From positions 62,001-126,000 of the IMG/VR virus record IMGVR_UViG_3300020154_000003: 64,000 nt of DNA, one strand, 5' to 3'. Below are positions 28,152 through 63,677 of this stretch, piece by piece. The notes beneath the pieces were generated by a model. It saw only the letters and a program-made list of their open reading frames with translations, was not told where the DNA came from and searched no databases. Every line of letters begins with the position of its first letter. Within the stretch, counting starts at the first letter, position 1. The position numbers and the translations under genes were made by a program.

Positions 28152-28182
28152 AAAAAAAACCCAAGCTTTTGGCTTGGGTTTT
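28152..28182 (-). terminator. attenuator terminator, tRNA operon 1
   Basis: AAAACCCAAGC-CAAAA-GCTTGGGTTTTTTTT. Confidence 0.9.
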
Positions 28183-28203
28183 CTGTATTGTCCTAATTAT
28201 ATT

Positions 28204-28302
28204 TTATCTATTTAGTGGACATAGAATACAAAATCCTCCCAAGCATGAGCATTGTGGCTGATGTTGGGGGTGTTGAAGTGCTATGTTTACTAATGTTTTC
28301 AT
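28204..28302 (-). CDS. leader peptide 1 (Gln/His/Pro sensor) MKTLVNIALQHPQHQPQCSCLGGFCILCPLNR
   Basis: 32 aa ORF between promoter and terminator; CAA CAC CCC CAA CAT CAG CCA CAA run. Confidence 0.85.
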   Translation of the reverse strand: MKTLVNIALQHPQHQPQCSCLGGFCILCPLNR

Positions 28303-28317
28303 TTCGTTATTGTGATG

Positions 28318-28356
28318 CAAATGTAATAGTAAATACGTAGATTCCAAAAAAAGGTT
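28318..28356 (-). promoter_or_regulatory. composite promoter of tRNA operon 1
   Basis: AAC-N16-CGTA, overlapping GTATTTA, then TACATTTG. Confidence 0.75.
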
Positions 28357-28375
28357 CAATTATTTTTTCACTTTT

Positions 28376-29422
28376 TTATTTAGGGCCAAAACTTCTATTT
28401 GGATTACCCCACAATTTAGCAGCAGAATCGGAGTGGGGAACATCAGGATGCAATGTCTCGCCAGTAAGTTCCTCAACCCATTTATACATCTCAGATGCAA
28501 TACCCATCCTTCTTTTATCGGGTCTCACATCAATACTTGCTTTCATTATTGAAGACTCATGCTGTTTACCGTAACTTACGTGACCTACCTCAGTACCATC
28601 TTCATTATCGAATGCGTATATATCGCCCCAAAGAAACCATTTCTCTTCAGGATATGGGTCTTTAATATGTATTAATGTAACCTTCGGAAGAACTTTCTTT
28701 TGATCGTAATTGGTGTAGTCCTTAAGTTTTTCTCTTTTATTTTTAACAAATTCAACACCAACATCATCATATGCCTCTTGAATCATTTCACCAACAAAAG
28801 CTGGTACTGGTCGCTTCGATCTATTCAATGAAAGTTCTAAACCCTTCTTCCAGTTAGGAGGCAAATTTGTAACGACATCGTTTATGTCTGTTTTTGTTTT
28901 TTCAAAATAATCTAAGATTTGGTCTTCCTGATGATCTTGAATATCTGGTGACACTAAAAATATAGTCCTGTTTGGAAACTCTATAAAGTAGTTCGTACTA
29001 ACTCTTTTAAGGCTGTCCCACACTCTGGTTGCATCGACTGTTCTATCAGTGTCAGTTGTTTTGTCTTTGTCTGATGACGATACAAACCCTAATTGATCGG
29101 AAAGCTTCTCATATATTTTCTTACCTAAACCGAGATTTCTAAAAGTATTTGGGATAGGCTCAACCGTCAAAATGTAATTAAAATTGGTAGGATCAATCAT
29201 GATTGATGGATTCCCAATTTCAGAATCAGCTTTAAACTGTGCATTAATTTCAGGGTCTCTGAAACCAATTTCATACCTACGATTATTGGCTTTTGGGATC
29301 AAAAGAATATCGTCTTTGGAAAGATTTTTGACTTTTTGCTGAATAGGGCTAACAGCATTGTCTGGTACGAGTTCAGAAATGTAGTTTTCCAGTTCTTCCT
29401 TAATTAAGTATTTTAAATCCAT
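28376..29422 (-). CDS. tandem GNAT acetyltransferase-like protein
   Basis: Two acetyl-CoA motif A copies: FRNLGLGKKIY and RRMGIASEMY; late motif at 29436. Confidence 0.65.
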   Translation of the reverse strand: MDLKYLIKEELENYISELVPDNAVSPIQQKVKNLSKDDILLIPKANNRRYEIGFRDPEINAQFKADSEIGNPSIMIDPTNFNYILTVEPIPNTFRNLGLGKKIYEKLSDQLGFVSSSDKDKTTDTDRTVDATRVWDSLKRVSTNYFIEFPNRTIFLVSPDIQDHQEDQILDYFEKTKTDINDVVTNLPPNWKKGLELSLNRSKRPVPAFVGEMIQEAYDDVGVEFVKNKREKLKDYTNYDQKKVLPKVTLIHIKDPYPEEKWFLWGDIYAFDNEDGTEVGHVSYGKQHESSIMKASIDVRPDKRRMGIASEMYKWVEELTGETLHPDVPHSDSAAKLWGNPNRSFGPK

Positions 29423-29451
29423 TTAAGATTTTTTTATAAATACTTAACTTT

Positions 29452-29955
29452 ATGCTATATTTGTATTTTATGGGATTGGACATCAATACAAGTAAAGGTC
29501 AACTTTCACTCACTCAGGAACGAGAGGTTCAGGAGATTGTTAGTAGTAAATGGAAGGTTGACGTAATTGAAACAGGGAAGGACTCGATTGCTGCCTGTGA
29601 TGGCTTTCTAAGCCGAAATAACGTGATTATAGCCTGTTTTGAGACTAAATGCAGGTATGACATGACTTATGAGGAACTACTGGACAGGGGTAGCTGGTTG
29701 GTCACTTTCGATAAAATAAAGAAGTGTCAATTAGTGTCAAAATTGTTGCAAGTTCCCTTTATAGGGTTCCTTTATTTGCTACCTAAAAGCAACCCGGAAC
29801 AAAAATTGTTGGTCTATTGGAAGATTACGGATAAACAAGGGAACTTTGTTTTTGATTTTGAGGTAATGGATCAGGCAACGCAAAGGACGATTAACGGTGG
29901 AGAGACGGTCAGGCGAAATGCTTATCTTCCCGTAAATGAAATGGTTATTCTATAA
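29452..29955 (+). CDS. PD-(D/E)XK nuclease-like protein
   Basis: CDG...FETKCR motif; true start may be a few codons downstream. Confidence 0.6.
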   Translation: MLYLYFMGLDINTSKGQLSLTQEREVQEIVSSKWKVDVIETGKDSIAACDGFLSRNNVIIACFETKCRYDMTYEELLDRGSWLVTFDKIKKCQLVSKLLQVPFIGFLYLLPKSNPEQKLLVYWKITDKQGNFVFDFEVMDQATQRTINGGETVRRNAYLPVNEMVIL

Positions 29956-29963
29956 GTATTTAT

Positions 29964-30479: not shown

Positions 30480-30887
30480 ATGAAAAAGTACAATCTCTAT
30501 TTGGATGATGTTAGAAAGCCAATTGATTCTTTGGATTATACCAAGAATAAGGCATATGTTACAGAAGAATGGGAGATCGTAAGATCATATGATGCTTTTG
30601 TGGCGCATATTACGAAGCATGGTTTGCCCGAACTTGTTTCGTTCGACCATGACTTGGCAGAGCCACATTATCATGAAAGCATGTATAAAGATGGGAAGGT
30701 TTATATGAAATATTTGGAAACCATTTCTGAAAAAACTGGCATGGATTGCGTTAAGTGGTTGGTGGAATACTGTCTCGATAACGGAAAAAAATTCCCAAAT
30801 TGGTACTTACACACCATGAATCCAGTTGGCCACGAGAACATGAAATCGTACATAATGTCGTTTTTGAAGCATTCAAGCACGATTTAG
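30480..30887 (+). CDS. cyclic-phosphate-processing receiver-like domain protein
   Basis: LYLDDVR, SFDHDL, TGMDC..WL, HTMNPVG motifs. Confidence 0.8.
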   Translation: MKKYNLYLDDVRKPIDSLDYTKNKAYVTEEWEIVRSYDAFVAHITKHGLPELVSFDHDLAEPHYHESMYKDGKVYMKYLETISEKTGMDCVKWLVEYCLDNGKKFPNWYLHTMNPVGHENMKSYIMSFLKHSSTI

Positions 30888-30951: not shown

Positions 30952-31266
30952 ATGAAACTGTTTGATAAGGTTAGTAATTTCCAAGAAGGCAAGGCAAATG
31001 TCCTTTATAATGAGATCGTTGATAAATTATCAGGTGATACTACCAATGAGAAAATCAGAACCGTTTGCCTTGACATTCTTGATAAGAAAATCAAGTTTGC
31101 TAACTCGCATAGAAAAAAAGGGAAAATAAATTTGATGGAAAATGAAATTTTCTTTGCAAATACGATAATTCATAATATCTTTGCGCCAGAGTATTCGATC
31201 ATCATCTCGAACGATGAGTTCGGACTCTCAGGAAGAAAAATCAAAAATAAATGGGAAAAACTGTAA
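30952..31266 (+). CDS. hypothetical protein
   Basis: 104 aa ORF. Confidence 0.55.
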   Translation: MKLFDKVSNFQEGKANVLYNEIVDKLSGDTTNEKIRTVCLDILDKKIKFANSHRKKGKINLMENEIFFANTIIHNIFAPEYSIIISNDEFGLSGRKIKNKWEKL

Positions 31267-31315
31267 CATTTTATAATTTTTTCCGTATTTACTAACAAAC
31301 CAGATAATACATTCG
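31265..31315 (+). promoter_or_regulatory. composite promoter of tRNA operon 2
   Basis: AAC-N16-CGTA overlapping GTATTTA; degenerate TACATTCG. Confidence 0.7.
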
Positions 31316-31318
31316 AAA

Positions 31319-31435
31319 ATGAAAACTTTAATATCATCAGTAACTTTAGAAGCATTAGCATTGAACGCTATGGCGGTTGCCTTAGTGGAGGATGATATGC
31401 GTCATGGGTTTTCTGATATTATAGTTGGATTCTAA
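31319..31435 (+). CDS. leader peptide 2 (Val/Leu-UUR/Glu/Ala/Met/Asp sensor) MKTLISSVTLEALALNAMAVALVEDDMRHGFSDIIVGF
   Basis: 38 aa ORF before terminator; 18 of 20 codons (8-27) are V/L/E/A/M/D; all Leu codons are TTA/TTG. Confidence 0.85.
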   Translation: MKTLISSVTLEALALNAMAVALVEDDMRHGFSDIIVGF

Positions 31436-31458
31436 AAAAATAACAACATCAAATCAGG

Positions 31459-31484
31459 AAACCCGACCGAAAGTCGGGTTTTTT
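31459..31484 (+). terminator. attenuator terminator, tRNA operon 2
   Basis: AAACCCGAC-CGAAA-GTCGGGTTTTTT. Confidence 0.9.
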
Positions 31485-31511
31485 GTTTTTAGGAGTTCTT
31501 TGAAAATAAAA

Positions 31512-31705
31512 AGTAATCGATGCGTGGTGGAATTGGTATACACTGCCTTTGAAACGCGATAAAACACATGAGCAACCAGTAAGCTGTTGTCATGATGCGC
31601 TGAGTAGTTGGACTGTCCGATGAAATCTAATCGGGCTGCGGGGGATAAACCGTGGGTTGTTTTCAACATCCAATACAGGTTCGAGTCCTGTCGCTGAAGA
31701 TTGCT
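31512..31705 (+). ncRNA. large tRNA-like RNA
   Basis: Leu-type D arm GTGGAATTGGTATACAC, T arm ACAGG-TTCGAGT-CCTGT, closing AGTAATC/GATTGCT, ~130 nt insert. Confidence 0.55.
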
Positions 31706-31717
31706 AGTAATTAAAAT

Positions 31718-31794
31718 GGTGCATTGGTGAAGTTGGTTATCATGCTTGCCTGTCACGCAAGAGTTCACGGGTTCGAGTCCCGTATGCACCGCCA
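31718..31794 (+). tRNA. tRNA-Asp(GTC)
   Basis: CTTGC-CTGTCAC-GCAAG; encoded CCA. Confidence 0.95.
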
Positions 31795-31797
31795 CTT

Positions 31798-31869
31798 AGT
31801 CAGTGGGTACGTAGGTATGTATGTCCGGCTGTCACCCGGAAGAAGCGGGTTCAATTCCCGTACTGACTG
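31798..31869 (+). tRNA. tRNA-Asp(GTC)
   Basis: TCCGG-CTGTCAC-CCGGA. Confidence 0.85.
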
Positions 31870-31895
31870 CGAAGGATGGTTGCAAACATCAGGGT

Positions 31896-31967
31896 TGTAT
31901 GTTCGTCTAGGGGTCTAGGACACTCCCTTCATCGGGGGAAACATTGGTTCGAATCCAATACATACTC
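31896..31967 (+). tRNA. atypical tRNA (Glu-type D arm, irregular anticodon loop TTCATC[G])
   Basis: Acceptor GTATGT/ACATAC, T arm ATTGG-TTCGAAT-CCAAT. Confidence 0.55.
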
Positions 31968-31972
31968 AAATT

Positions 31973-32080
31973 GGTTGTGTAGTTTATGCGACTGTAAAAT
32001 CGGTCGGGCGTGTGATGCGCAGCATGTTTGGTTAGAATACTCTGGAATGAGAGAAGCAGGTTCGAATCCTGACACAACCG
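31973..32080 (+). ncRNA. tRNA-like RNA with D-loop insertion
   Basis: Acceptor GGTTGTG/CACAACC, T loop TTCGAAT, non-canonical anticodon loop. Confidence 0.55.
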
Positions 32081-32210
32081 CAAAAAAAGAAGAAATGAAA
32101 ATTGAATTTATCACAATTGGGAACGTGCAGTTTTGGAGAGTCACAACATATGACTATTCATATAGCAGCAAAGATTTAGGTAAAGCTATTTTCAAATGCA
32201 TTGGCAGAAT

Positions 32211-32294
32211 GCCCCAATGATGGAACTGGTAGTCATGCCACACTCAAAATGTGGTGCTCGTAAGGGCGTGTAGGTTCGAATCCTACTTGGGGTA
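32211..32294 (+). tRNA. tRNA-Leu(CAA)
   Basis: CCACA-CTCAAAA-TGTGG, long variable arm. Confidence 0.93.
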
Positions 32295-32304
32295 CAATAA
32301 ATAT

Positions 32305-32376
32305 GGGGCCATCGTATAATGGCTATTACTCCTGACTTGCACTCAGGGAATTAGGGTTCGAATCCCTATGGCTCCA
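32305..32376 (+). tRNA. tRNA-Ala(TGC)
   Basis: G3:U70; CCTGA-CTTGCAC-TCAGG. Confidence 0.93.
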
Positions 32377-32377
32377 C

Positions 32378-32590
32378 ATGTATAAGAAATATAGTAAAGA
32401 AGAGTTTGGAAAAATATTTAACAAAGTTGTTGAAGAAGCTTTTTCAGAAGATGAAGTAGGTGAAACTGGTGTGTTGATTAAAGCGGGTGATATGGTGGTA
32501 TATACTAGTAGAGAGTTTTACGAAGAATTTAAAACTGATTTAATAAGACAATCACTCAAACCAGATGGAACCACTACGGAAGGAAATTAA
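32378..32590 (+). CDS. hypothetical protein
   Basis: 70 aa ORF between tRNAs. Confidence 0.55.
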   Translation: MYKKYSKEEFGKIFNKVVEEAFSEDEVGETGVLIKAGDMVVYTSREFYEEFKTDLIRQSLKPDGTTTEGN

Positions 32591-32765
32591 TACTAGATTC
32601 AAATTTGCTAAAGAGCAAGGTGAAATCTTTTTTAAACAGATAAAGAATGTTGAACGTGGAGGTGGAAATGTAGTCTCTTGTCTCGCAGCAAGAAAATATA
32701 GACAGGCTGGAAGAATTTACGATCATTATCAAAAGGAGTTTACTAAATATATAAACCAGAAATGA
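32565..32765 (+). CDS. hypothetical protein
   Basis: 66 aa ORF. Confidence 0.5.
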   Translation: MEPLRKEINTRFKFAKEQGEIFFKQIKNVERGGGNVVSCLAARKYRQAGRIYDHYQKEFTKYINQK

Positions 32766-32799
32766 AAAAGAAGGCACGATTATGTCGCCACGATAGCAA

Positions 32800-32884
32800 G
32801 GCTTCGTGGTGGAACGGCAGACACGCTAGACTTAAAATCTAGTGCTCAGTAATGGGCGTATGGGTTCAAGTCCCATCGAGGCTA
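32800..32884 (+). tRNA. tRNA-Leu(TAA)
   Basis: CTAGA-CTTAAAA-TCTAG, long variable arm. Confidence 0.93.
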
Positions 32885-33038
32885 CAATTTAAATGTAGTA
32901 AAGTTATGAATGAAAAAAGATTAGAGCAATTAAGAGAAACGTGGGTTAAGAACGTAATGAAAGTTCAGAACATCACAAGAGCAGAGGCTGAAGTTTTATA
33001 TAGTAAAATTCAACCTCACAATTTAGCCAAGTAAAAAT

Positions 33039-33111
33039 GGCGCATAGGACGATAGGCTAAGTCACAACCCTTTCAAGGTTGAAAAACAGGGTTCGAGTCC
33101 CTGATGCGCTA
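33039..33111 (+). tRNA. tRNA-Glu(TTC)
   Basis: CAACC-CTTTCAA-GGTTG. Confidence 0.9.
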
Positions 33112-33113
33112 CG

Positions 33114-33311
33114 ATGGAACAAAAGAAATTTAAGTTAGTCTTTGATGTTGAAAAACTTGTCAAAGAAGGTAAGGCAACCATAATACCTGAGCATGAAGTT
33201 CAAAATTCTTTTAGGAGAATTAATGCTGAAATGAAAAAAGCACATCGTGATTTTAGACGTAAATCAAAGATGTCAGAACTGAGGGCCAGTAAGATTATAT
33301 TGAATTCTTAA
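33114..33311 (+). CDS. hypothetical protein
   Basis: 65 aa basic ORF. Confidence 0.5.
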   Translation: MEQKKFKLVFDVEKLVKEGKATIIPEHEVQNSFRRINAEMKKAHRDFRRKSKMSELRASKIILNS

Positions 33312-33316
33312 TTAAG

Positions 33317-33388
33317 GCTCCCATCGAATAACGGTTAGTTCGCGTCACTTTCAATGACGAAATAGGGGTTCGATTCCCCTTGGGAGTA
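33317..33388 (+). tRNA. tRNA-Glu(TTC)
   Basis: CGTCA-CTTTCAA-TGACG. Confidence 0.92.
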
Positions 33389-33446
33389 CAAAAAAAGTTC
33401 TTTGAAATTTTGAATATTGTAACTTGTTTATTAAGTTTACATAAAT

Positions 33447-33519
33447 GGCGATATAGTATAACGGCTTATTACGTCCCTCTCATAAGGGGAAAAAGATGGT
33501 TCGATTCCATCTATCGCTA
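33447..33519 (+). tRNA. tRNA-Met(CAT), elongator-type
   Basis: TCCCT-CTCATAA-GGGGA. Confidence 0.85.
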
Positions 33520-33522
33520 CTT

Positions 33523-33599
33523 ACGACAGAATAATCACAAGTGGTGCTTGTGGCTTCCGTGCTTTGGAAGTGATCATGGTTCGATTCCATCTGTCGTTA
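33523..33599 (+). tRNA. atypical tRNA-like element (loop GTGCTTT)
   Basis: ACGACAG/CTGTCGT acceptor, 6-bp D stem, T loop TTCGATT. Confidence 0.5.
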
Positions 33600-33605
33600 C
33601 AACAT

Positions 33606-33693
33606 CGCGGGATAGAGTAGTGGCCTAACTCGTCAGTCTCATAAGCTGAACCGTCTCATAAGGATGGCGTTGGTTCGAATCCAACTCCCGCTA
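33606..33693 (+). tRNA. tRNA-fMet-like(CAT) with extra CAT-bearing arm
   Basis: CGCGGG acceptor with C1 mismatch; GTCTCATAAG occurs twice. Confidence 0.8.
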
Positions 33694-33830
33694 CAAAATT
33701 TGTTAAACTTAAAGGTATGTATTATGGATGTCCAAAATGTGGTTCAACTCAAGTAAGTGTTCTAACAGAAAATTATTATATCTGTTTGGGTTGTAACAAT
33801 ACATGGACTGAAAATATAAAAAATAAACAT

Positions 33831-33903
33831 CGCGGGGTGGAGAAGTCGGTATCTCGTTTGGCTCATAACCAAAAGGTCGCAGGTTCAAGTCCTGCTCCCG
33901 CTA
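33831..33903 (+). tRNA. tRNA-fMet(CAT)
   Basis: CGCGGGG acceptor with C1 mismatch; TTTGG-CTCATAA-CCAAA. Confidence 0.9.
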
Positions 33904-33912
33904 CAAAGTAAA

Positions 33913-34305
33913 ATGAGGAATAAGGAAAAACAAAAGCAGTATGCTAGGAAACATTATTTAAAGAATAAGGATAAAGTAAAAAAAAGTGCTGCATTTTATA
34001 AAAAAATTTCTAAAAAAAGAAATAAAGATTTTGTTATTGATTATTTATTAAAGCATCCATGTATTGATTGTTCAGAATCAGATATTGTTGTATTGGATTT
34101 TGATCATGTAAAAGATGATAAAATAATGAATATCGCTGATGCGATAAATAATGGTTGGTCAATAGAAAAACTAAAGACAGAAATTGAAAAATGTGTTATT
34201 CGATGTGCAAATTGTCATAGAAGAATAACACATCTAAGAAGACATAGCAGCTTGCGCATAGCTGGTAAACTTGTTAGATCGGATCATGCCCGAATCGGAC
34301 TTTAA
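33913..34305 (+). CDS. HNH endonuclease
   Basis: CIDC...LDFDHV...CVIRCANCHRRIT. Confidence 0.85.
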   Translation: MRNKEKQKQYARKHYLKNKDKVKKSAAFYKKISKKRNKDFVIDYLLKHPCIDCSESDIVVLDFDHVKDDKIMNIADAINNGWSIEKLKTEIEKCVIRCANCHRRITHLRRHSSLRIAGKLVRSDHARIGL

Positions 34306-34357
34306 TCTGCGGAGCAATAGCTTACATTGGGGTCTGAATCAAGTATGCTGCAATTAT

Positions 34358-34430
34358 GCTTTCGTAGCTTAGTGGCAAAAGCACCATCTCGACAAGGTGG
34401 GAACCGTGAGTTCGAGTCTCACCGAAAGTA
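34358..34430 (+). tRNA. tRNA-Val(GAC)
   Basis: CCATC-TCGACAA-GGTGG (C33). Confidence 0.85.
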
Positions 34431-34431
34431 C

Positions 34432-34620
34432 ATGAATGTTAAAACAGTTGACGAAAAAATTATTGGCCTCACAATAGATGAGGCTAAAAAATTATGGGAT
34501 GATATTCGTGTTATAGAAATTGATGGAAATCAAACAGTAATAACAAGGAATTACGTTCTAATGAGAATGAATGTAAAAGTAAGAGACGGTAAAATTGTTG
34601 AGTTCGTCAACTTCGGATAA
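34432..34620 (+). CDS. peptidase inhibitor I78/potato-I-like small protein
   Basis: IGLT..EA...IRVI..DG..TVITRNY...RMNV.V.DGKI. Confidence 0.55.
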   Translation: MNVKTVDEKIIGLTIDEAKKLWDDIRVIEIDGNQTVITRNYVLMRMNVKVRDGKIVEFVNFG

Positions 34621-34621
34621 C

Positions 34622-34694
34622 ACTTTCGTAGCTTAGTGGCAAAAGCATCTGCATTACAAGCAGACAACCGGGGGTTCGAGTCCCTCCGAAAGTA
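34622..34694 (+). tRNA. tRNA-Val(TAC)
   Basis: TCTGC-ATTACAA-GCAGA. Confidence 0.88.
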
Positions 34695-34700
34695 CAACAT

Positions 34701-34774
34701 GCCCACGTAACTCAGTGGTTCAGAGAGGTCGCCTTACAAGCGATCAGTCGGGAGTTCGATTCTCTCCGTGGGTA
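34701..34774 (+). tRNA. tRNA-Val(TAC)
   Basis: GTCGC-CTTACAA-GCGAT. Confidence 0.9.
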
Positions 34775-34775
34775 C

Positions 34776-35126
34776 TTATTTTTTAAGATTCTTGAAAAAA
34801 GGTATGACATATTTTATCCAAGCGTATGGCTTACGCTCGAATAAATAAGTCAGGTTGCTTTCATTATCATAAGCTTCATGCTCAAACGGATTTTGACGAT
34901 AAGCTTTGTAATGATCCTTGGTAGCCAATCTCTTAATTAAATAGAAGATACCATAAAGAATCCAATGAAATATAAAACCCATTTCAACTTGTTGGTGGAA
35001 ATGAACTAACTCATGATTGATAAGAACGTGATCATTCAATTTTGATTTATCTTTTAAGAAGATAAAAATGAAAATTGACATACCGTTAAAGTTTTTTAGG
35101 AGTTTAGGTGCTACAATTTTGAACAT
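34776..35126 (-). CDS. HExxH metallopeptidase-like membrane protein
   Basis: NHELVH..Q, NPFEHEAY. Confidence 0.7.
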   Translation of the reverse strand: MFKIVAPKLLKNFNGMSIFIFIFLKDKSKLNDHVLINHELVHFHQQVEMGFIFHWILYGIFYLIKRLATKDHYKAYRQNPFEHEAYDNESNLTYLFERKPYAWIKYVIPFFKNLKK

Positions 35127-35156
35127 AAGAAGGTTTATTAATAAATACTGAAAAAA

Positions 35157-35762
35157 GTGAAAATAGAATTAAAAAATAAGAGTTGGTTTTCTAGTGATTT
35201 TCACTTAGGTCACACAAATATTGCAGGGAAAAAAGTATCGAAATGGAATGGCGGCTATAGGGATTTCGATAGTGTTAGCCAGATGGATGAAACGATTATA
35301 AATACAATCAATCGCTATGTTGGAGTAGAGGACACGTTGTTTTTTTTAGGTGATTTTACATTCGCAAGAAAAGAAGCAGTGGCTAATTATCGTGATAGAA
35401 TTTATTGTCAAACAATTCATTTTGTAAAAGGTAATCATGATCCGCACGTTGACATGTATGCGGAAAAGTTTACTTCAGTAGGGACTGAACTTTTATTCGA
35501 ATACGAACCAAACAAACGATTGTACCTCCATCATTTCTCACACAGAGTATGGCACAGTTCGCACAGAGGTACAATTCATTTGTATGGCCATTCACATGGG
35601 ACAATTCCTGATCATGGTAAATCTATGGATGTTGGGGTTGATGTAGCCTACAGAATGTTCGGAGAATATAGACCATTCTCACTTGAAGAAATAATTGATA
35701 TAATGGCAAAAAAGGAGATACCAAATCTTGATCATCACAGAGCCAAGTTGGTAAGAGGATAA
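35157..35762 (+). CDS. calcineurin-like metallophosphoesterase
   Basis: SDFHLGH, LGDF, GNHD, GHSH. Confidence 0.9.
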   Translation: MKIELKNKSWFSSDFHLGHTNIAGKKVSKWNGGYRDFDSVSQMDETIINTINRYVGVEDTLFFLGDFTFARKEAVANYRDRIYCQTIHFVKGNHDPHVDMYAEKFTSVGTELLFEYEPNKRLYLHHFSHRVWHSSHRGTIHLYGHSHGTIPDHGKSMDVGVDVAYRMFGEYRPFSLEEIIDIMAKKEIPNLDHHRAKLVRG

Positions 35763-36475
35763 TGAAAGTAGTAGTAATTGGAGATATTCATGGTAGAGAC
35801 AATTGGAAAGCAATTATTCCTAAAGTAGACGAATACGATAAAATTGTCTTCGTGGGGGACTATACTGACAGTTATGAATTGCCAAATCCAGTAATTCTTC
35901 AAAACCTACAGGAGATCATTAAATTCAGAAGAGAATTTCCTGATAAAGTCGTGACATTGGTGGGGAACCATGATATTGCTTATATGTGGTATGGTGAAAC
36001 ATTATTCTTAAATAACGGTTTTAGACCTGAAGCAGCACACGATTTATCTACAATTTTTAGAGCACATCACGATATTTTTGATGTTGCATGGCAAAGCGGT
36101 AAAACTATCATCACCCATGCTGGTATTACAAATGGATGGATGAGATACAATGCTGAAACGATTCAACATGCTCGTGAAAGATATAAAACTGAAACGATTG
36201 CAGATACATTTAATATGATGTTACGTAATTATACGTATAATCGGTGTTTACATCAACTCAGTGGTAAAAGAGGTGGCCCGTATAACTACGGAGGAATTAC
36301 TTGGGCAGATAAACAAGAAACCGAAAAAGACGGTTTGAAAGGATACATACAGGTAGTAGGACACACACCTGTTGAAGACATCACAACAGTGAAGTTGGAA
36401 GATTATGATTTCCAAATTACGTATTGTGATGTATTATGGAAAAAGACATCATTTTATGAATTTATTATTGACTAA
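35762..36475 (+). CDS. calcineurin-like metallophosphoesterase
   Basis: GDIHG, GDYTD, GNHD, HAG, GHTP. Confidence 0.9.
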   Translation: MKVVVIGDIHGRDNWKAIIPKVDEYDKIVFVGDYTDSYELPNPVILQNLQEIIKFRREFPDKVVTLVGNHDIAYMWYGETLFLNNGFRPEAAHDLSTIFRAHHDIFDVAWQSGKTIITHAGITNGWMRYNAETIQHARERYKTETIADTFNMMLRNYTYNRCLHQLSGKRGGPYNYGGITWADKQETEKDGLKGYIQVVGHTPVEDITTVKLEDYDFQITYCDVLWKKTSFYEFIID

Positions 36476-36684
36476 TGGGAGAAATTGAATTAAATATATC
36501 AGTAAACAGAAGAACGAAAGAACTAATTGGATATTGGTCGCCTGACGGTGATCCGATAGGAATTATTGTTAAGGCATATGCTGTTGATGATCTCGAAAGA
36601 AAATTCGAGGAAGCAAAAAAACAATACATAAACTTGCATGGTGGTAGCCATGAGGTGTATGTGCAATTAAAAAAAGAGGACTAA
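36475..36684 (+). CDS. small protein, weak HicB-like pattern
   Basis: GIIVKAYAVDDLERKFEEA. Confidence 0.4.
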   Translation: MGEIELNISVNRRTKELIGYWSPDGDPIGIIVKAYAVDDLERKFEEAKKQYINLHGGSHEVYVQLKKED

Positions 36685-36699
36685 TAATCCTCTTTTTTC

Positions 36700-39804: not shown

Positions 39805-39843
39805 AACTTTTTTTTGGAAATTACGTATTTATCTTTACCTTTG
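39805..39843 (+). promoter_or_regulatory. composite promoter of tRNA operon 3
   Basis: AAC-N16-CGTA, GTATTTAT, TACCTTTG. Confidence 0.75.
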
Positions 39844-39879
39844 TGCAACAATTGCGAAGGCAAAAAAGAAAAAGAAATC

Positions 39880-39948
39880 ATGAGAACTTCAAAGACATAT
39901 AAAACTTATAAGTATCAGCCACAAGCTGAGTCGAGTTTTATTGTCTAA
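39880..39948 (+). CDS. leader peptide 3 (Lys/Tyr sensor) MRTSKTYKTYKYQPQAESSFIV
   Basis: 22 aa ORF; AAG ACA TAT AAA ACT TAT AAG TAT run. Confidence 0.85.
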   Translation: MRTSKTYKTYKYQPQAESSFIV

Positions 39949-39971
39949 AAATATCTTGCAAGGAAGACACC

Positions 39972-40004
39972 AAAAACCCGATTCAGAAATGAGTCGGGTT
40001 TTTT
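39972..40004 (+). terminator. attenuator terminator, tRNA operon 3
   Basis: AAAAACCCGATTCA-GAAA-TGAGTCGGGTTTTTT. Confidence 0.92.
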
Positions 40005-40441: not shown

Positions 40442-40529
40442 GCATCCGTGGCAGAATGGAGAATGATGCCCCACACTTTTAATGTGGACTGTCGTAAGAC
40501 TAACGTAGGTTCGATCCCTACCGGATGCA
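40442..40529 (+). tRNA. tRNA-Lys(TTT) with long variable arm
   Basis: CCACA-CTTTTAA-TGTGG plus GTC-GTAA-GAC arm. Confidence 0.8.
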
Positions 40530-40591
40530 CAAACGTAGATTTATGCGGTGAATAGAGACGCTATTCATCGCAGAATATGCGGAGATTAGTC

Positions 40592-40663
40592 GCCTCCTTA
40601 ACTCAATGGTAGAGTACCATACTTTTAATATGGGAGTTATCAGTTCGAATCTGATAGGGGGTA
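40592..40663 (+). tRNA. tRNA-Lys(TTT)
   Basis: CCATA-CTTTTAA-TATGG. Confidence 0.9.
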
Positions 40664-40666
40664 CTA

Positions 40667-40888
40667 GGGCTTTGCAGATTGTTTCTCAATTGCATAGAAC
40701 ATGTGCCCATATCAAACAAGGGTTCATAGAAATTGAAATACGGGTTGACTTTCGGTGTGGAGAACCGAGCCGCCTATAGGGGCGGTGCCATTGTGCTAAG
40801 GTAAAATAATGTAGAATGCTGCTGAATAGAATAGATGCGCATAAAGATTCAGTAAGGTCTACAGTAGGTTCGAATCCCCTGCAGCCCA
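40667..40888 (+). ncRNA. large structured RNA with tRNA-like ends
   Basis: GGGCT/AGCCC-A ends, GGTTCGAATCC T loop, several internal helices. Confidence 0.55.
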
Positions 40889-40894
40889 CAATAT

Positions 40895-40967
40895 ACCTTC
40901 GTAGCTTAACTGGTAGAGTAGGTGACTCTTAATCATCGGGTTGTGGGTTCGAGTCCCACCGGAGGTA
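40895..40967 (+). tRNA. tRNA-Lys(CTT)
   Basis: GGTGA-CTCTTAA-TCATC. Confidence 0.92.
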
Positions 40968-41272
40968 CATGAATGAAATTAATACCATATGTATGGATTG
41001 TGGAAAAGAGTGTGAACGATGGCAAATCGTAAATACTGCCATGATCGGAAAAGTATGGGAAGTGTGGTGTTATTGTAAGGAATGTAACGTTGAAACTTTT
41101 CATCCTTTTGAGGGTGGAGAAGATGATTAAAAAAAACAATGTTATGAATATTGCGTATAAGTTATAAAGTTCGTAATATTGTCTTCCCAATCGCAGTTAA
41201 TTCTAAGGCGTAGAATGTCACGATAGGAATAAGGTTATATCAAAATGAGGGAGTAGCAATACTTCCTCACAT

Positions 41273-41357
41273 GGGTAGGTAGCAAAGTTCGGTTAAATGC
41301 GCCACGCTGTAAACGTGGTCTCTTCGGAGTTCGGTGGTTCAAATCCATCCCTGCCCA
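41273..41357 (+). tRNA. tRNA-Tyr(GTA)
   Basis: CCACG-CTGTAAA-CGTGG. Confidence 0.92.
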
Positions 41358-41358
41358 C

Positions 41359-41541
41359 AAGACACATCATGGTACTCTGACCGAGAACGATAGTGTGCTG
41401 GATGAAATATAGGTAAGGCCAGCAGAGCGGATAGGAGATTGAATAAGACTACAATCGTCAGTCACTTCCGAGTATAGTTGCACTTCAGAGAGTTTGAGCA
41501 TGTCGGTTATATCGCTTAGATGAAAGGTTCTTGATGTTCTT
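41359..41541 (+). ncRNA. candidate structured RNA
   Basis: Non-coding spacer closed by AAGACACATCA/TGATGTTCTT. Confidence 0.4.
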
Positions 41542-41545
41542 ACAT

Positions 41546-41630
41546 AGGTTGGTAGCAAAGTTCGGTCAAATGCGCTGCGCTGTAAACGCAGTCTCTTCGG
41601 AGTTCGGGGGTTCAAATCCCTCTCAACCTA
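41546..41630 (+). tRNA. tRNA-Tyr(GTA)
   Basis: CTGCG-CTGTAAA-CGCAG. Confidence 0.92.
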
Positions 41631-41796
41631 CAAAATGGACTTAATTAAAGAAACGTATATCGATAAGGAAACTGGCATGTATGTCTCTGTGATTAATAAA
41701 GAAGCATTGATTGATCGAGAGAGTAAAACACCTCAGGAAGCCTTAATAAGATCGTACAATCGATTCATGGATGCAATAAAGAAGCCATTGAAAAAT

Positions 41797-41879
<83 letters not shown>

Positions 41880-41888
41880 CTATTTATG

Positions 41889-51400: not shown

Positions 51401-51439
51401 AACTTTTAATTGCAAGTCTCGTATTTATGGTTACATTTG
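51401..51439 (+). promoter_or_regulatory. composite promoter of tRNA operon 4
   Basis: AAC-N16-CGTA, GTATTTAT, TACATTTG. Confidence 0.75.
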
Positions 51440-51454
51440 CAACGCATTAAAAAA

Positions 51455-51586
51455 ATGGAAAAACTAACGTCAAATATTAATCGATCAAACTGGTGTGGAA
51501 GTAATTCTATATCAGGGAATATTCTTGGCTCTACATTTAGAGGCACGAACGGGTTAATGTTTGATACAGATGGTGGAACACTGTAA
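51455..51586 (+). CDS. leader peptide 4 MEKLTSNINRSNWCGSNSISGNILGSTFRGTNGLMFDTDGGTL
   Basis: 43 aa; codons 4-33 use only L,T,S,N,I,R,W,C,G,F. Confidence 0.85.
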   Translation: MEKLTSNINRSNWCGSNSISGNILGSTFRGTNGLMFDTDGGTL

Positions 51587-51610
51587 ATAGAAGAAAAAAT
51601 ATCAAACACT

Positions 51611-51638
51611 AACCCGACCCAAAAAGTCGGGTTTTTTT
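51611..51638 (+). terminator. attenuator terminator, tRNA operon 4
   Basis: AACCCGAC-CCAAAAA-GTCGGGTTTTTTT. Confidence 0.9.
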
Positions 51639-51646
51639 ATGTCTAT

Positions 51647-61539: not shown

Positions 61540-61612
61540 GTCTTAGTAGCACAATTGGCGGTGCAACGATCTCTAAAATCGGAGGATGCGGGTTCGATCC
61601 CCGCCTAAGGCA
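61540..61612 (+). tRNA. amber suppressor tRNA (CTA)
   Basis: GTCTTAG/CTAAGGC acceptor; CGAT-CTCTAAA-ATCG. Confidence 0.85.
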
Positions 61613-61613
61613 C

Positions 61614-63585: not shown

Positions 63586-63658
63586 GAGAGTATGGCTCAG
63601 TGGTTAGAGCAAGGACTTCTAAACTCCTAGGTCGTGGGTTCGAATCCCACTACTCTCT
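63586..63658 (+). tRNA. amber suppressor tRNA (CTA)
   Basis: GAGAGTA/TACTCTC acceptor; AGGAC-TTCTAAA-CTCCT (C31:C39 mismatch). Confidence 0.75.
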
Positions 63659-63677
63659 CTCAATAAAATAAAAAGTT

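Follow-up and report, generated by a model that had tools for sequence, protein, structure and literature searches.

A soil jumbo phage (IMG/VR record IMGVR_UViG_3300020154_000003) carries a large tRNA array, and within the 64,000-nucleotide stretch of its genome that we analysed, referred to herein as the window, each tRNA cluster is preceded by a short open reading frame (ORF) and a terminator-like hairpin. This raises the question of whether the short ORF senses the supply of the tRNAs encoded downstream. We focused on the unit upstream of the Asp/Leu-UUR/Ala/Glu/Met/Val cluster, which a first-pass annotation had proposed to be an attenuator with a codon-box-specific leader, and which we refer to as A2. 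Its 38-codon ORF contains a core, codons 8–27, that reads VTLEALALNAMAVALVEDDM. In agreement with the annotation, 18 of these 20 codons belong to the set {V,L,E,A,M,D}, the exceptions being Thr and Asn, and all six amino acids occur. All five Leu codons are TTA or TTG, and the five Ala codons (GCA, GCA, GCT, GCG, GCC) sample all four possibilities. Given the codon usage of this phage, however, these last two details are individually weak (p = 0.059 and p = 0.078, respectively). To determine whether the composition of the core exceeds chance, ORFs were scored by their best segment for the amino acids of the downstream tRNAs. The A2 leader scored 18.7 bits for its own tRNA set, which ranks first of 402 short ATG ORFs in the window (random-peptide p about 1.5e-5). 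The coordinates of A2 and of the related features are collected in Table 1.

Table 1. Features of unit A2, its downstream region and the three sister units, in window coordinates.
Feature	Coordinates	Strand	Description
A2 promoter-like motif	31265..31291	+	AAC-N-TTTT...CGTATTTA, with CGTATTTA at 31284-31291; promoter function inferred
A2 leader ORF	31319..31435	+	38 codons plus TAA (31433-31435)
A2 regulatory core	31340..31399	+	Codons 8-27
A2 region 1	31324..31346	+	5' strand of the predicted long upstream hairpin (anti-antiterminator); overlaps codons 2-10
A2 region 2	31401..31426	+	Within the 3' part of the ORF; 31401-31417 pairs with region 3 as the antiterminator (-20.4 kcal/mol), 31406-31426 pairs instead with region 1
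A2 region 3	31453..31467	+	3' strand of the antiterminator; 5' arm of the terminator plus upstream bases
A2 intrinsic terminator	31455..31490	+	13-pair stem (31455-31485) with 6 G-C pairs, CGAAA loop, T-run
A2 tRNA array	31718..34775	+	Asp x2, one tRNA with an odd anticodon loop, Leu(CAA), Ala(TGC), Leu(TAA), Glu x2, Met(CAT) x3, Val(GAC), Val(TAC) x2; small ORFs interspersed
Probable tail of the transcription unit	34776..36698	+	Two phosphoesterase-like ORFs, up to the next strong + strand terminator (36670-36698); extent of the operon inferred
Sister unit A1	28154..28347	-	Promoter TTG-N7-CGTATTTA-N4-TAcaTTTG (28347-28318); leader ORF 28302-28204, core QHPQHQPQ; terminator 28184-28154; followed by Pro, His, Pro, one odd tRNA, Gln, Gln (28143-27109)
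Sister unit A3	39814..40003	+	Promoter 39814-39843; leader ORF 39880-39948, core KTYKTYKY; terminator 39972-40003; followed by Lys x3 and Tyr x3 (40442-41880)
Sister unit A4	51410..51640	+	Promoter 51410-51439; leader ORF 51455-51586, 29-codon core of N/S/G/I/T/R/F/W/C/L; terminator 51611-51633 plus T-run; followed by Asn, Phe, Thr, Arg, Ile, Ser, Gly, Trp, Leu(CUN), Cys tRNAs from 51755 onward

Leader codons match the downstream tRNAs at four clusters

Since the same design recurs at the three other tRNA clusters of the window, we next compared each leader with each operon. The scores of A1 to A4 for their own operons were 26.4, 18.7, 11.4 and 26.3 bits, while those for the other operons were 9.9 bits or less, and each leader ranked first of the 402 short ORFs for its own set. 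Together the four cores cover all 20 amino acids. The match extends to the codon level, as 7/8, 16/20, 6/8 and 29/29 core codons of A1 to A4 can be read by the anticodons of their own operon, compared with 0–4 by those of other operons. The 16/20 for A2 assumes strict wobble and rises to 18/20 if U34 of tRNA-Ala reads all of GCN. Every anticodon of operons A1–A3 has a cognate codon in its core. The motif upstream of A2 is shared by all four units and lies upstream of 17 of 21 distinct units in other contigs, although A2 lacks the adjacent TAnnTTTG (-7) box, and its promoter is therefore unclear.

Predicted alternative structures of the A2 leader

We examined the predicted folds of the leader. 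The A2 terminator is the top-ranked terminator-like site in 26–44 kb, and across five leaders of this type its helix is 97.8% paired, with compensatory changes in 3 of 9 pairs. The antiterminator pairing proposed by the first-pass annotation, GGGTTTTCTGAT (31406–31417) with ATCAGGAAACCC (31453–31464), can indeed pair, with 12 pairs, one of them G-U, and this is the predicted fold of the transcript before the 3' arm of the terminator exists. The pairing of region 2 with region 3 exceeds that of 200 dinucleotide shuffles (z = -4.3), and the whole leader folds at -49.5 kcal/mol (z = -4.7 against 200 shuffles). In contrast, the competing TATGGCG/CGTCATG hairpin of the annotation was not found in any predicted fold. 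The upstream structure predicted instead is a long hairpin between regions 1 and 2, which takes in the 5' strand of the antiterminator.

To assess how ribosome position might affect these structures, folding was repeated with a ribosome footprint masked. A1 and A3 switched from a free terminator arm to 0.8–0.9 sequestered only when the ribosome sat on the regulatory codons, reproducing classical behaviour. A2 and A4 were not classical at equilibrium, as the antiterminator formed even without a ribosome or with one at the stop codon, and termination in the unstalled state of these units therefore rests on kinetic and steric arguments. In the Lys/Tyr type, the regulatory codons sit in a helix that co-varies.

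Conservation and co-variation in other phages

We next asked whether such units occur elsewhere. Searches of GenBank phages with this region and with a Lys/Tyr unit gave only tRNA-level hits and no cultured relative, a protein search with the neighbouring 348-aa gene found only the source contig, and a DNA pattern for AVALVEDD found only the window's own contig and one other leader, L039, the other 37 hits being chance. Pattern scans, however, found 54 distinct units in viral and metagenome contigs. Among these are four other distinct leaders of the A2 type (numbered leaders from these scans carry the prefix L): L039 and L212 are close orthologs followed by the same tRNA order, while L016 and L007 are diverged versions. 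All five leaders of this type are predicted to fold into the same three states, namely region 1 with 2, region 2 with 3, and region 1 with 2 plus the terminator, with a region 1–2 helix of different sequence. L039, L212 and L007 lack the TAnnTTTG box, as does A2. Column-wise co-variation of the antiterminator helix in these five leaders was not above shuffles, because the helices differ in register.

Across the 54 units, the own tRNA set outscored unrelated sets in 1300 of 1312 comparisons, and 98% of downstream tRNA identities occur in the leader, although some amino acids occur only once or twice in a leader. For 15 of the 20 amino acids, presence in the leader is significantly associated (p < 0.01) with presence of that amino acid's tRNA in the operon; W, for example, is present in 7/7 leaders with a Trp tRNA downstream against 4/51 without (p = 1e-6). 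As the units are related by descent, these family-wide p-values overstate independence. Rearranged operons have rearranged leaders: the L268 core TYCFSSSWFSY precedes Trp, Phe, Ser, Cys, Tyr; the L050 core ITITQITRIR precedes Thr, Arg, Arg, Ile; and the L007 core, with W and CTN Leu codons, precedes Asp, Glu, Val, Leu(CUN), Ala, Trp. This comparison also supports the codon-box specificity that is only marginal within the window. The A2 leader type uses TTR where the operon carries Leu(CAA/TAA), the L007 version uses CTC/CTA/CTG where the operon carries Leu(GAG/TAG/CAG), and the cores of the Asn/Phe/Ser/Gly-type leaders use CTN with Leu(TAG/AAG).

The 3' part of the ORF pairs with the terminator arm beyond shuffles in 46 of 54 units (median z = -3.5), and this pairing is specific to each unit's own arm in 2060 of 2402 cross-comparisons (permutation p <= 2e-4). 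Four more such units were found in an unrelated 642-kb megaphage, LR756502.1, with scores of 11.8–20.5 for their own operons against 4.8 or less for the others. A leader match in the Lak-B1 megaphage is suggestive only (p about 0.02 after correction for its AT-rich composition). No leader ORF plus terminator unit was found before the tRNA clusters of the three other phages examined, Aeromonas T4-like phage AsFcp_2, Flavobacterium phage immuto and Bacteroides phage crAss001.

Relationship to known regulatory systems

Only tRNA models of Rfam pass in the window, and no leader model (Trp, His, Leu or Thr) or T-box model matches 31250–32230 at E <= 1; weak hits over the leader, such as STnc150 (26.8 bits against a gathering score of 60), were treated as chance. 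The multivalent ilvGMEDA (ilvL) and thr (thrL) attenuators of Enterobacteria likewise have a short leader ORF with codons for several amino acids (Ile/Leu/Val; Thr/Ile), four RNA regions with alternative pairings before an intrinsic terminator, and a ribosome stall that favours the antiterminator. They differ in controlling biosynthetic enzymes rather than tRNA genes, whereas the units described here are phage-encoded, monitor up to 10–11 amino acids in one leader, and have the leader stop codon after region 2 rather than before it. The trpL and hisL attenuators share the logic of region 1 with 2, 2 with 3, and 3 with 4, but use single-amino-acid runs and control biosynthetic operons. The pheST attenuator (pheM leader) of E. 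coli controls a component of the translation apparatus, phenylalanyl-tRNA synthetase, in response to the cognate aminoacyl-tRNA, but for one amino acid; here the controlled product is the tRNA itself, which would directly relieve the stall. T-box riboswitches also sense tRNA status and switch between terminator and antiterminator ahead of translation-related genes, but bind uncharged tRNA directly and need no translation, while here an ORF carries the specificity. The phage itself is T4-like (Gp23 capsid, gp20 portal and T4-type terminase), and full-text literature searches found no report of attenuators before phage tRNA genes.

Discussion

Our data support the interpretation, in which we are fairly confident, that A2 is a ribosome-mediated (leader-peptide) transcription attenuator that gates a phage tRNA operon and senses the supply of the tRNAs that the operon encodes. 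The mechanism is inferred from sequence. The only sequencing runs holding this phage, labelled metatranscriptomic, contained relatives at about 92% identity as short assembled contigs that are probably DNA, in which no transcript starts or ends were seen. In this model, transcription starts near the conserved CGTATTTA motif, or reads in from the upstream genes, and a ribosome translates the leader, presuming that transcription and translation are coupled in the presumed Bacteroidota host. When aminoacyl-tRNAs for Val, Leu(UUR), Glu, Ala, Met and Asp codons are all plentiful, the ribosome runs through region 2 to the stop codon, region 2 cannot pair with region 3, and the terminator forms, such that RNA polymerase stops before the tRNA genes. 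When any of these tRNAs is scarce, the ribosome stalls inside codons 8–27, where it covers region 1 and leaves region 2 free to pair with the 5' arm of the terminator, and polymerase reads into the tRNA array. As the phage tRNAs accumulate, stalling would end and the operon would shut itself down, a negative feedback with OR logic over six amino acids. The three sister units probably do the same for the other tRNA operons.

Alternatively, the same machinery may respond to amino-acid supply or general translational status rather than tRNA abundance, timing tRNA expression during infection as a multi-amino-acid starvation or ribosome-availability gauge. A stalled ribosome cannot distinguish a missing tRNA from an uncharged one, classical attenuators such as trp and his respond to charging, and the anatomy fits either signal. 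We consider this unlikely, since making more tRNA does not relieve amino-acid starvation and feedback would be pointless, and since the match extends to anticodon and codon box and follows tRNA genes when they move between operons, both of which are expected if the products themselves close the loop. Less probable still is that the conserved ORF and hairpins control precursor processing or stability through translation, or encode a functional micropeptide. No transcript data exist, and the 3' parts of the peptides show some conservation within types, such as IGIGN or ESGLV in the Lys/Tyr type. However, these motifs coincide with the RNA strand that pairs with each unit's own terminator arm, the core keeps its composition but not its sequence, a strong terminator with a T-run follows every unit, and no micropeptide function predicts that amino-acid composition tracks operon content. 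Coincidence, in which a chance ORF lies next to the terminator of the upstream gene and both leader and tRNA set merely reflect codon usage, is effectively refuted by the diagonal specificity of four of four clusters, the 54 units elsewhere, the unit-specific pairing and the negative control phages, despite the marginal Leu, Ala and Lak-B1 results.

A broader possibility, which we judge slightly more likely than not, is that large phages of Bacteroidota carry a four-channel sensor of decoding capacity, in which each leader spells out the anticodon repertoire of its operon and the phage reads the host's usable tRNA pool codon by codon, deploying only the tRNAs that are short. Likely triggers are host tRNA degradation, tRNA-cleaving immunity, or a mismatch in codon usage. 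This would be the first case of tRNA genes autoregulated by translation of their own cognate codons.

The units occur in dozens of uncultivated phages from soil, sludge and freshwater, and in the published genomes of LR756502.1 and, as a weaker candidate, one Lak megaphage they seem to have gone unnoticed. Since a leader ORF of this kind predicts which tRNAs lie downstream, and the reverse, it helps to annotate huge-phage genomes and find operon boundaries, and each unit, at about 170 nt and specific to a codon box, could serve as a readout of tRNA availability. tRNA genes are generally thought to be controlled at promoters and by processing; attenuation by a leader peptide made of the operon's own cognate codons would be a new, self-closing feedback loop for tRNA supply. 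Codon usage, host shutoff and escape from tRNA-targeting defence have all been proposed to explain why phages carry tRNAs and when they use them; these leaders would make tRNA expression conditional on a measurable deficit, which turns this question into a testable one.

Organization of the tRNA gene clusters and their leader units

The window is part of a 366-kb viral contig assembled from a soil metagenome, IMGVR_UViG_3300020154_000003, and it holds 52 tRNA genes, 50 of which pass the Rfam tRNA model. The phage is T4-like, as it has a Gp23 capsid protein, a gp20 portal and a T4-type terminase. Within the target unit, referred to as A2 herein, a 38-codon ORF is followed by a 19-nt spacer, the strongest terminator-like hairpin of the region, and an array of tRNA genes. 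Every countable statement of the first-pass annotation was confirmed: codons 8-27 of the ORF are 18/20 from the set {V,L,E,A,M,D}, all five Leu codons are TTA or TTG, all four Ala codons occur, and the proposed antiterminator strands are complementary over 12 pairs, including one G-U. Only the TATGGCG/CGTCATG hairpin, which had been proposed as a competing upstream structure, was absent from the predicted folds.

The same layout precedes every tRNA cluster in the window, giving four units in total (A1 to A4). The four leader cores together use all 20 amino acids, with almost no overlap. The split of tRNAs among the operons loosely follows the first codon base, with A1 covering CAN and CCN, A2 covering GAN, GCN and GUN plus UUR and AUG, and A3 covering AAR and UAY. 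All four units share an upstream motif. In A1, A3 and A4 this motif is TTG-N7-CGTATTTA-N4-TAnnTTTG, which occurs nowhere else in the window and appears to contain the -33 and -7 boxes of Bacteroidota promoters. A2 keeps AAC-N-TTTT...CGTATTTA but lacks the -7 box.

Coordinates of the leader units and neighboring features. Positions are those of the window unless an accession is given.
Feature	Coordinates	Strand	Description
A1 leader ORF	28302-28204	minus	Core QHPQHQPQ; downstream tRNAs Pro, His, Pro, one odd tRNA, Gln, Gln
A2 leader ORF (target)	31319-31435	plus	Core is codons 8-27; downstream amino acids Asp, Leu(UUR), Ala, Glu, Met, Val
A2 motif region	31284-31318		Keeps CGTATTTA, lacks the TAnnTTTG box; ATTCGAAA directly precedes the ATG
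A2 upstream hairpin (predicted)	31324-31346 with 31406-31426		Codons 2-10 (region 1) with the 3' part of the ORF (region 2)
A2 antiterminator, favored predicted fold	31401-31417 with 31453-31467		Region 2 with the strand that includes the terminator's 5' arm (region 3)
A2 antiterminator, complementary strands	31406-31417 with 31453-31464		As proposed in the first-pass annotation
A2 terminator-like hairpin	31455-31485		Stem, with a T-run to 31490
A2 spacer	31490-31717		230 nt; contains the T-arm-like ACAGGTTCGAGTCCTGT
A2 tRNA array	31718-34775		Asp x2, one odd tRNA, Leu(CAA), Ala, Leu(TAA), Glu x2, Met x3, Val x3
A3 leader ORF	39880-39948	plus	Core KTYKTYKY; downstream tRNAs Lys x3, Tyr x3
A4 leader ORF	51455-51586	plus	Core of 29 codons of N, S, G, I, T, R, F, W, C and one CTT Leu; downstream tRNAs Asn, Phe, Thr, Arg, Ile, Ser, Gly, Trp, Leu(CUN), Cys
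First tRNA gene with a 6-nt anticodon loop	27259-27333	minus	
Second tRNA gene with a 6-nt anticodon loop	31896-31967	plus	38 bits with the Rfam tRNA model
tRNA-like stretch	31973-32079	plus	Matching acceptor stem and T-arm, long insert
tRNAs with anticodon CTA	61540-61613 and 63586-63659		Labeled Pyl by ARAGORN
Segments lacking in relatives at about 92% identity	31969-32200, 29451-29956, 28356-28758		A 230-nt piece holding the tRNA-like stretch, the 167-aa ORF, and 401 nt of the 348-aa gene region
cREC_REC protein	30480-30887		Directly upstream of the A2 unit
ORF with an HNH-like motif	33913-34305		Inside the A2 tRNA array; no Pfam hit
ORF that looks phosphoesterase-like	35157-35762		By eye; no Pfam hit
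ORF matching calcineurin-like phosphoesterase families	35762-36475		Follows the A2 tRNA array
Units in LR756502.1 (L271)	3708, 6198, 19726, 31936		
Candidate unit in Lak-B1, MK250020.1 (L272)	16069		Suggestive only

Two tRNA genes have 6-nt anticodon loops and so could not be named by ARAGORN, while a third tRNA-like stretch was not called by any tool. The spacer between the A2 terminator and the first called tRNA contains a perfect T-arm-like sequence but received no tRNA call. Relatives at about 92% identity in other soil samples lack three segments of the window, which are strain-level insertions or deletions inside and beside the tRNA operons. The HNH-like motif inside the A2 array was recognized by eye only, and both phosphoesterase-like ORFs follow the array. 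Two further tRNAs carry the amber-reading anticodon CTA, although large ORFs, including capsid and portal, are intact under the standard code; suppression, partial recoding or counter-defence are possible roles.

Leader codon content matches the downstream tRNA genes

To assess whether each leader is matched to its own operon, we calculated best-segment log-odds scores using background amino-acid frequencies from the 34 large ORFs. The scores of the four leaders, A1 to A4, for their own operon's amino-acid set were 26.4, 18.7, 11.4 and 26.3 bits, while every mismatched pairing scored 9.9 or less. Each leader was the top scorer for its own set among all 402 short ATG ORFs of the window, and random-peptide p values ranged from 5e-6 to 1e-3. 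At the codon level under strict wobble, the anticodons of the own operon read 7/8, 16/20, 6/8 and 29/29 core codons, whereas those of other operons read 0-4. Every distinct anticodon of operons A1-A3 has a cognate codon in its leader core. Two details of the A2 leader were not significant by themselves, namely the use of TTR for 5/5 Leu codons (p = 0.059) and the occurrence of four Ala codons in five draws (p = 0.078).

Predicted alternative folds of the leader transcripts

We next examined the predicted folding of the A2 transcript. Up to the spacer, the transcript folds into a long hairpin in which codons 2-10 pair with the 3' part of the ORF. Once region 3 is made, the favored fold is the antiterminator, and once the terminator's 3' arm is made, the minimum-energy fold is the upstream hairpin plus the terminator (-49.5 kcal/mol, z = -4.7).

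To model the effect of translation, a ribosome footprint was masked codon by codon. A1 and A3 behaved classically: the 5' arm of the terminator was free without a ribosome (0.23 and 0.37), sequestered when the ribosome sat on the regulatory codons (0.80 and 0.90), and free again once the ribosome had moved on (0.03-0.30). In A2 and A4, the arm was sequestered at equilibrium unless the ribosome lay on region 2. For these two units, termination in the unstalled state therefore depends on the inferences that the upstream hairpin forms first and that a ribosome at the stop codon fills the loop between regions 2 and 3.

Related units in other viral and metagenome contigs

A search of GenBank phages revealed nothing close. 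Scanning for the promoter motif returned 50 viral loci and 62 metagenome loci, most of which carry a short ORF, a CCCGA...TCGGG-type terminator and tRNAs. A detector that ignores the promoter gave 54 distinct leader units, four of which are of the target's type. Two of these, L039 on a 371-kb viral contig and L212 on a 25-kb metagenome contig, share the AVALVEDD stretch and are followed by tRNAs in the same order as in the window, although L212 has only one Met tRNA. In the ortholog L039, tRNA-Asp follows the terminator almost directly. The other two leaders contain W: L016, on a 72-kb contig, precedes Ala, Asp, Asp, Trp, Glu, Val and Glu tRNAs, and L007, on a 41-kb contig, precedes Asp, Glu, Val, Leu(GAG/TAG/CAG), Ala and Trp tRNAs, with four of its six Leu codons being CTC, CTA or CTG. 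The ORF is therefore conserved, and its content follows the operon. The A2, L039, L212 and L007 leaders keep CGTATTTA but lack the TAnnTTTG box found 4 nt downstream in most other units, and a conserved ATTCGAAA directly precedes the ATG instead.

Other rearrangements among the detected units say the same. The core TYCFSSSWFSY of unit L268 precedes Trp, Phe, Ser, Cys and Tyr tRNAs, the core ITITQITRIR of unit L050 precedes Thr, Arg, Arg and Ile tRNAs, and a T/R-rich core in unit L034 precedes Thr tRNAs. Across the units, the own set beat unrelated sets in 1300 of 1312 comparisons, and 98% of downstream tRNA identities occurred in the leader (this analysis used a generic background composition). 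For 15 of 20 amino acids, occurrence in the leader was significantly associated with the presence of its tRNA. As these units are related by descent, the p values overstate independence, and the rearranged cases are the informative ones.

Antiterminator pairing across the family

In 46 of 54 units, the ORF contains a site that pairs with the 5' arm of the terminator more strongly than dinucleotide shuffles do (median z = -3.5). In nearly every unit this site lies in the 3' part of the ORF, after the core, and it usually ends before the stop codon. The site matches each unit's own terminator stem, for example GGAATCGGG with CCCGATTC, GCTTGGG with CCCAAGC, AGTCGGG with CCCGAC, and GGAGGG with CCCTCC. 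The own arm beat foreign arms in 2060 of 2402 comparisons (permutation p <= 2e-4). On the five-sequence alignment of the target's type, the terminator helix showed three compensatory pairs. In the Lys/Tyr type, the regulatory codons sit in a helix that co-varies: the last Tyr and Lys codons (UAUAAG) form a conserved hairpin with CUUAUA just 5' of region 2 (alignment columns 7-13 with 19-25), and G-C to A-U compensatory changes occur in four sequences.

Units in an independent lineage and control genomes

The published 642-kb uncultured megaphage LR756502.1 has four units of the same logic, but with different amino-acid groupings, plain Bacteroidota-type promoters and no CGTATTTA. In this genome, a K/H/F leader precedes Phe, His and Lys tRNAs, an S/R leader precedes Arg, Ser and Arg, an E/Y/I/G/A leader precedes Glu, Tyr, Ile, Gly and Ala, and an N/L/T/V/I/R leader precedes Asn, Leu, Val, Ile, Thr and Arg. 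The diagonal scores of these units were 11.8-20.5 bits, against 4.8 or less off the diagonal. Prevotella phage Lak-B1 has a candidate that is only suggestive (p about 0.02). In contrast, Aeromonas phage AsFcp_2, Flavobacterium phage immuto and Bacteroides phage crAss001 have tRNA clusters without such units, and 120 promoter-motif hits in cellular genomes contained none. In Flavobacterium defluvii (NZ_FQWC01000008.1), the TTG-N7-CGTATTTA-N4-TAnnTTTG motif lies about 55 nt before a host tRNA-Arg gene, with no leader ORF or terminator between them, and the phage motif may imitate a host tRNA promoter.

Discussion

The logic of these units is that of the trp, his, ilv, thr and pheST attenuators known from the literature. 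What differs is that the regulated genes are tRNAs, that one leader monitors 2 to about 11 amino acids chosen to mirror the operon, that specificity extends to the codon box, that the stop codon lies beyond region 2, and that the system is viral. No Rfam leader or T-box model matched. Searches for leader peptides or attenuators before tRNA genes or in phages returned nothing relevant in the full-text literature examined, which does not cover all journals.

The anatomy of the units and the co-variation of leader and operon content are shown by our analyses, and the best-supported reading is classical ribosome-mediated attenuation applied to tRNA operons. Translation of the leader, the direction of the switch and the physiological trigger are inferred, and the mechanism is still to be demonstrated. 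The protein directly upstream of the A2 unit has a cREC_REC (cyclic-phosphate-processing receiver) domain that is RNA-repair-associated, which would be compatible with conflicts involving tRNA damage but is only context. In the attenuation reading, scarcity of any cognate aminoacyl-tRNA would stall the ribosome in the core, the antiterminator would form, and the tRNA genes would be transcribed, with their products then ending the stall.
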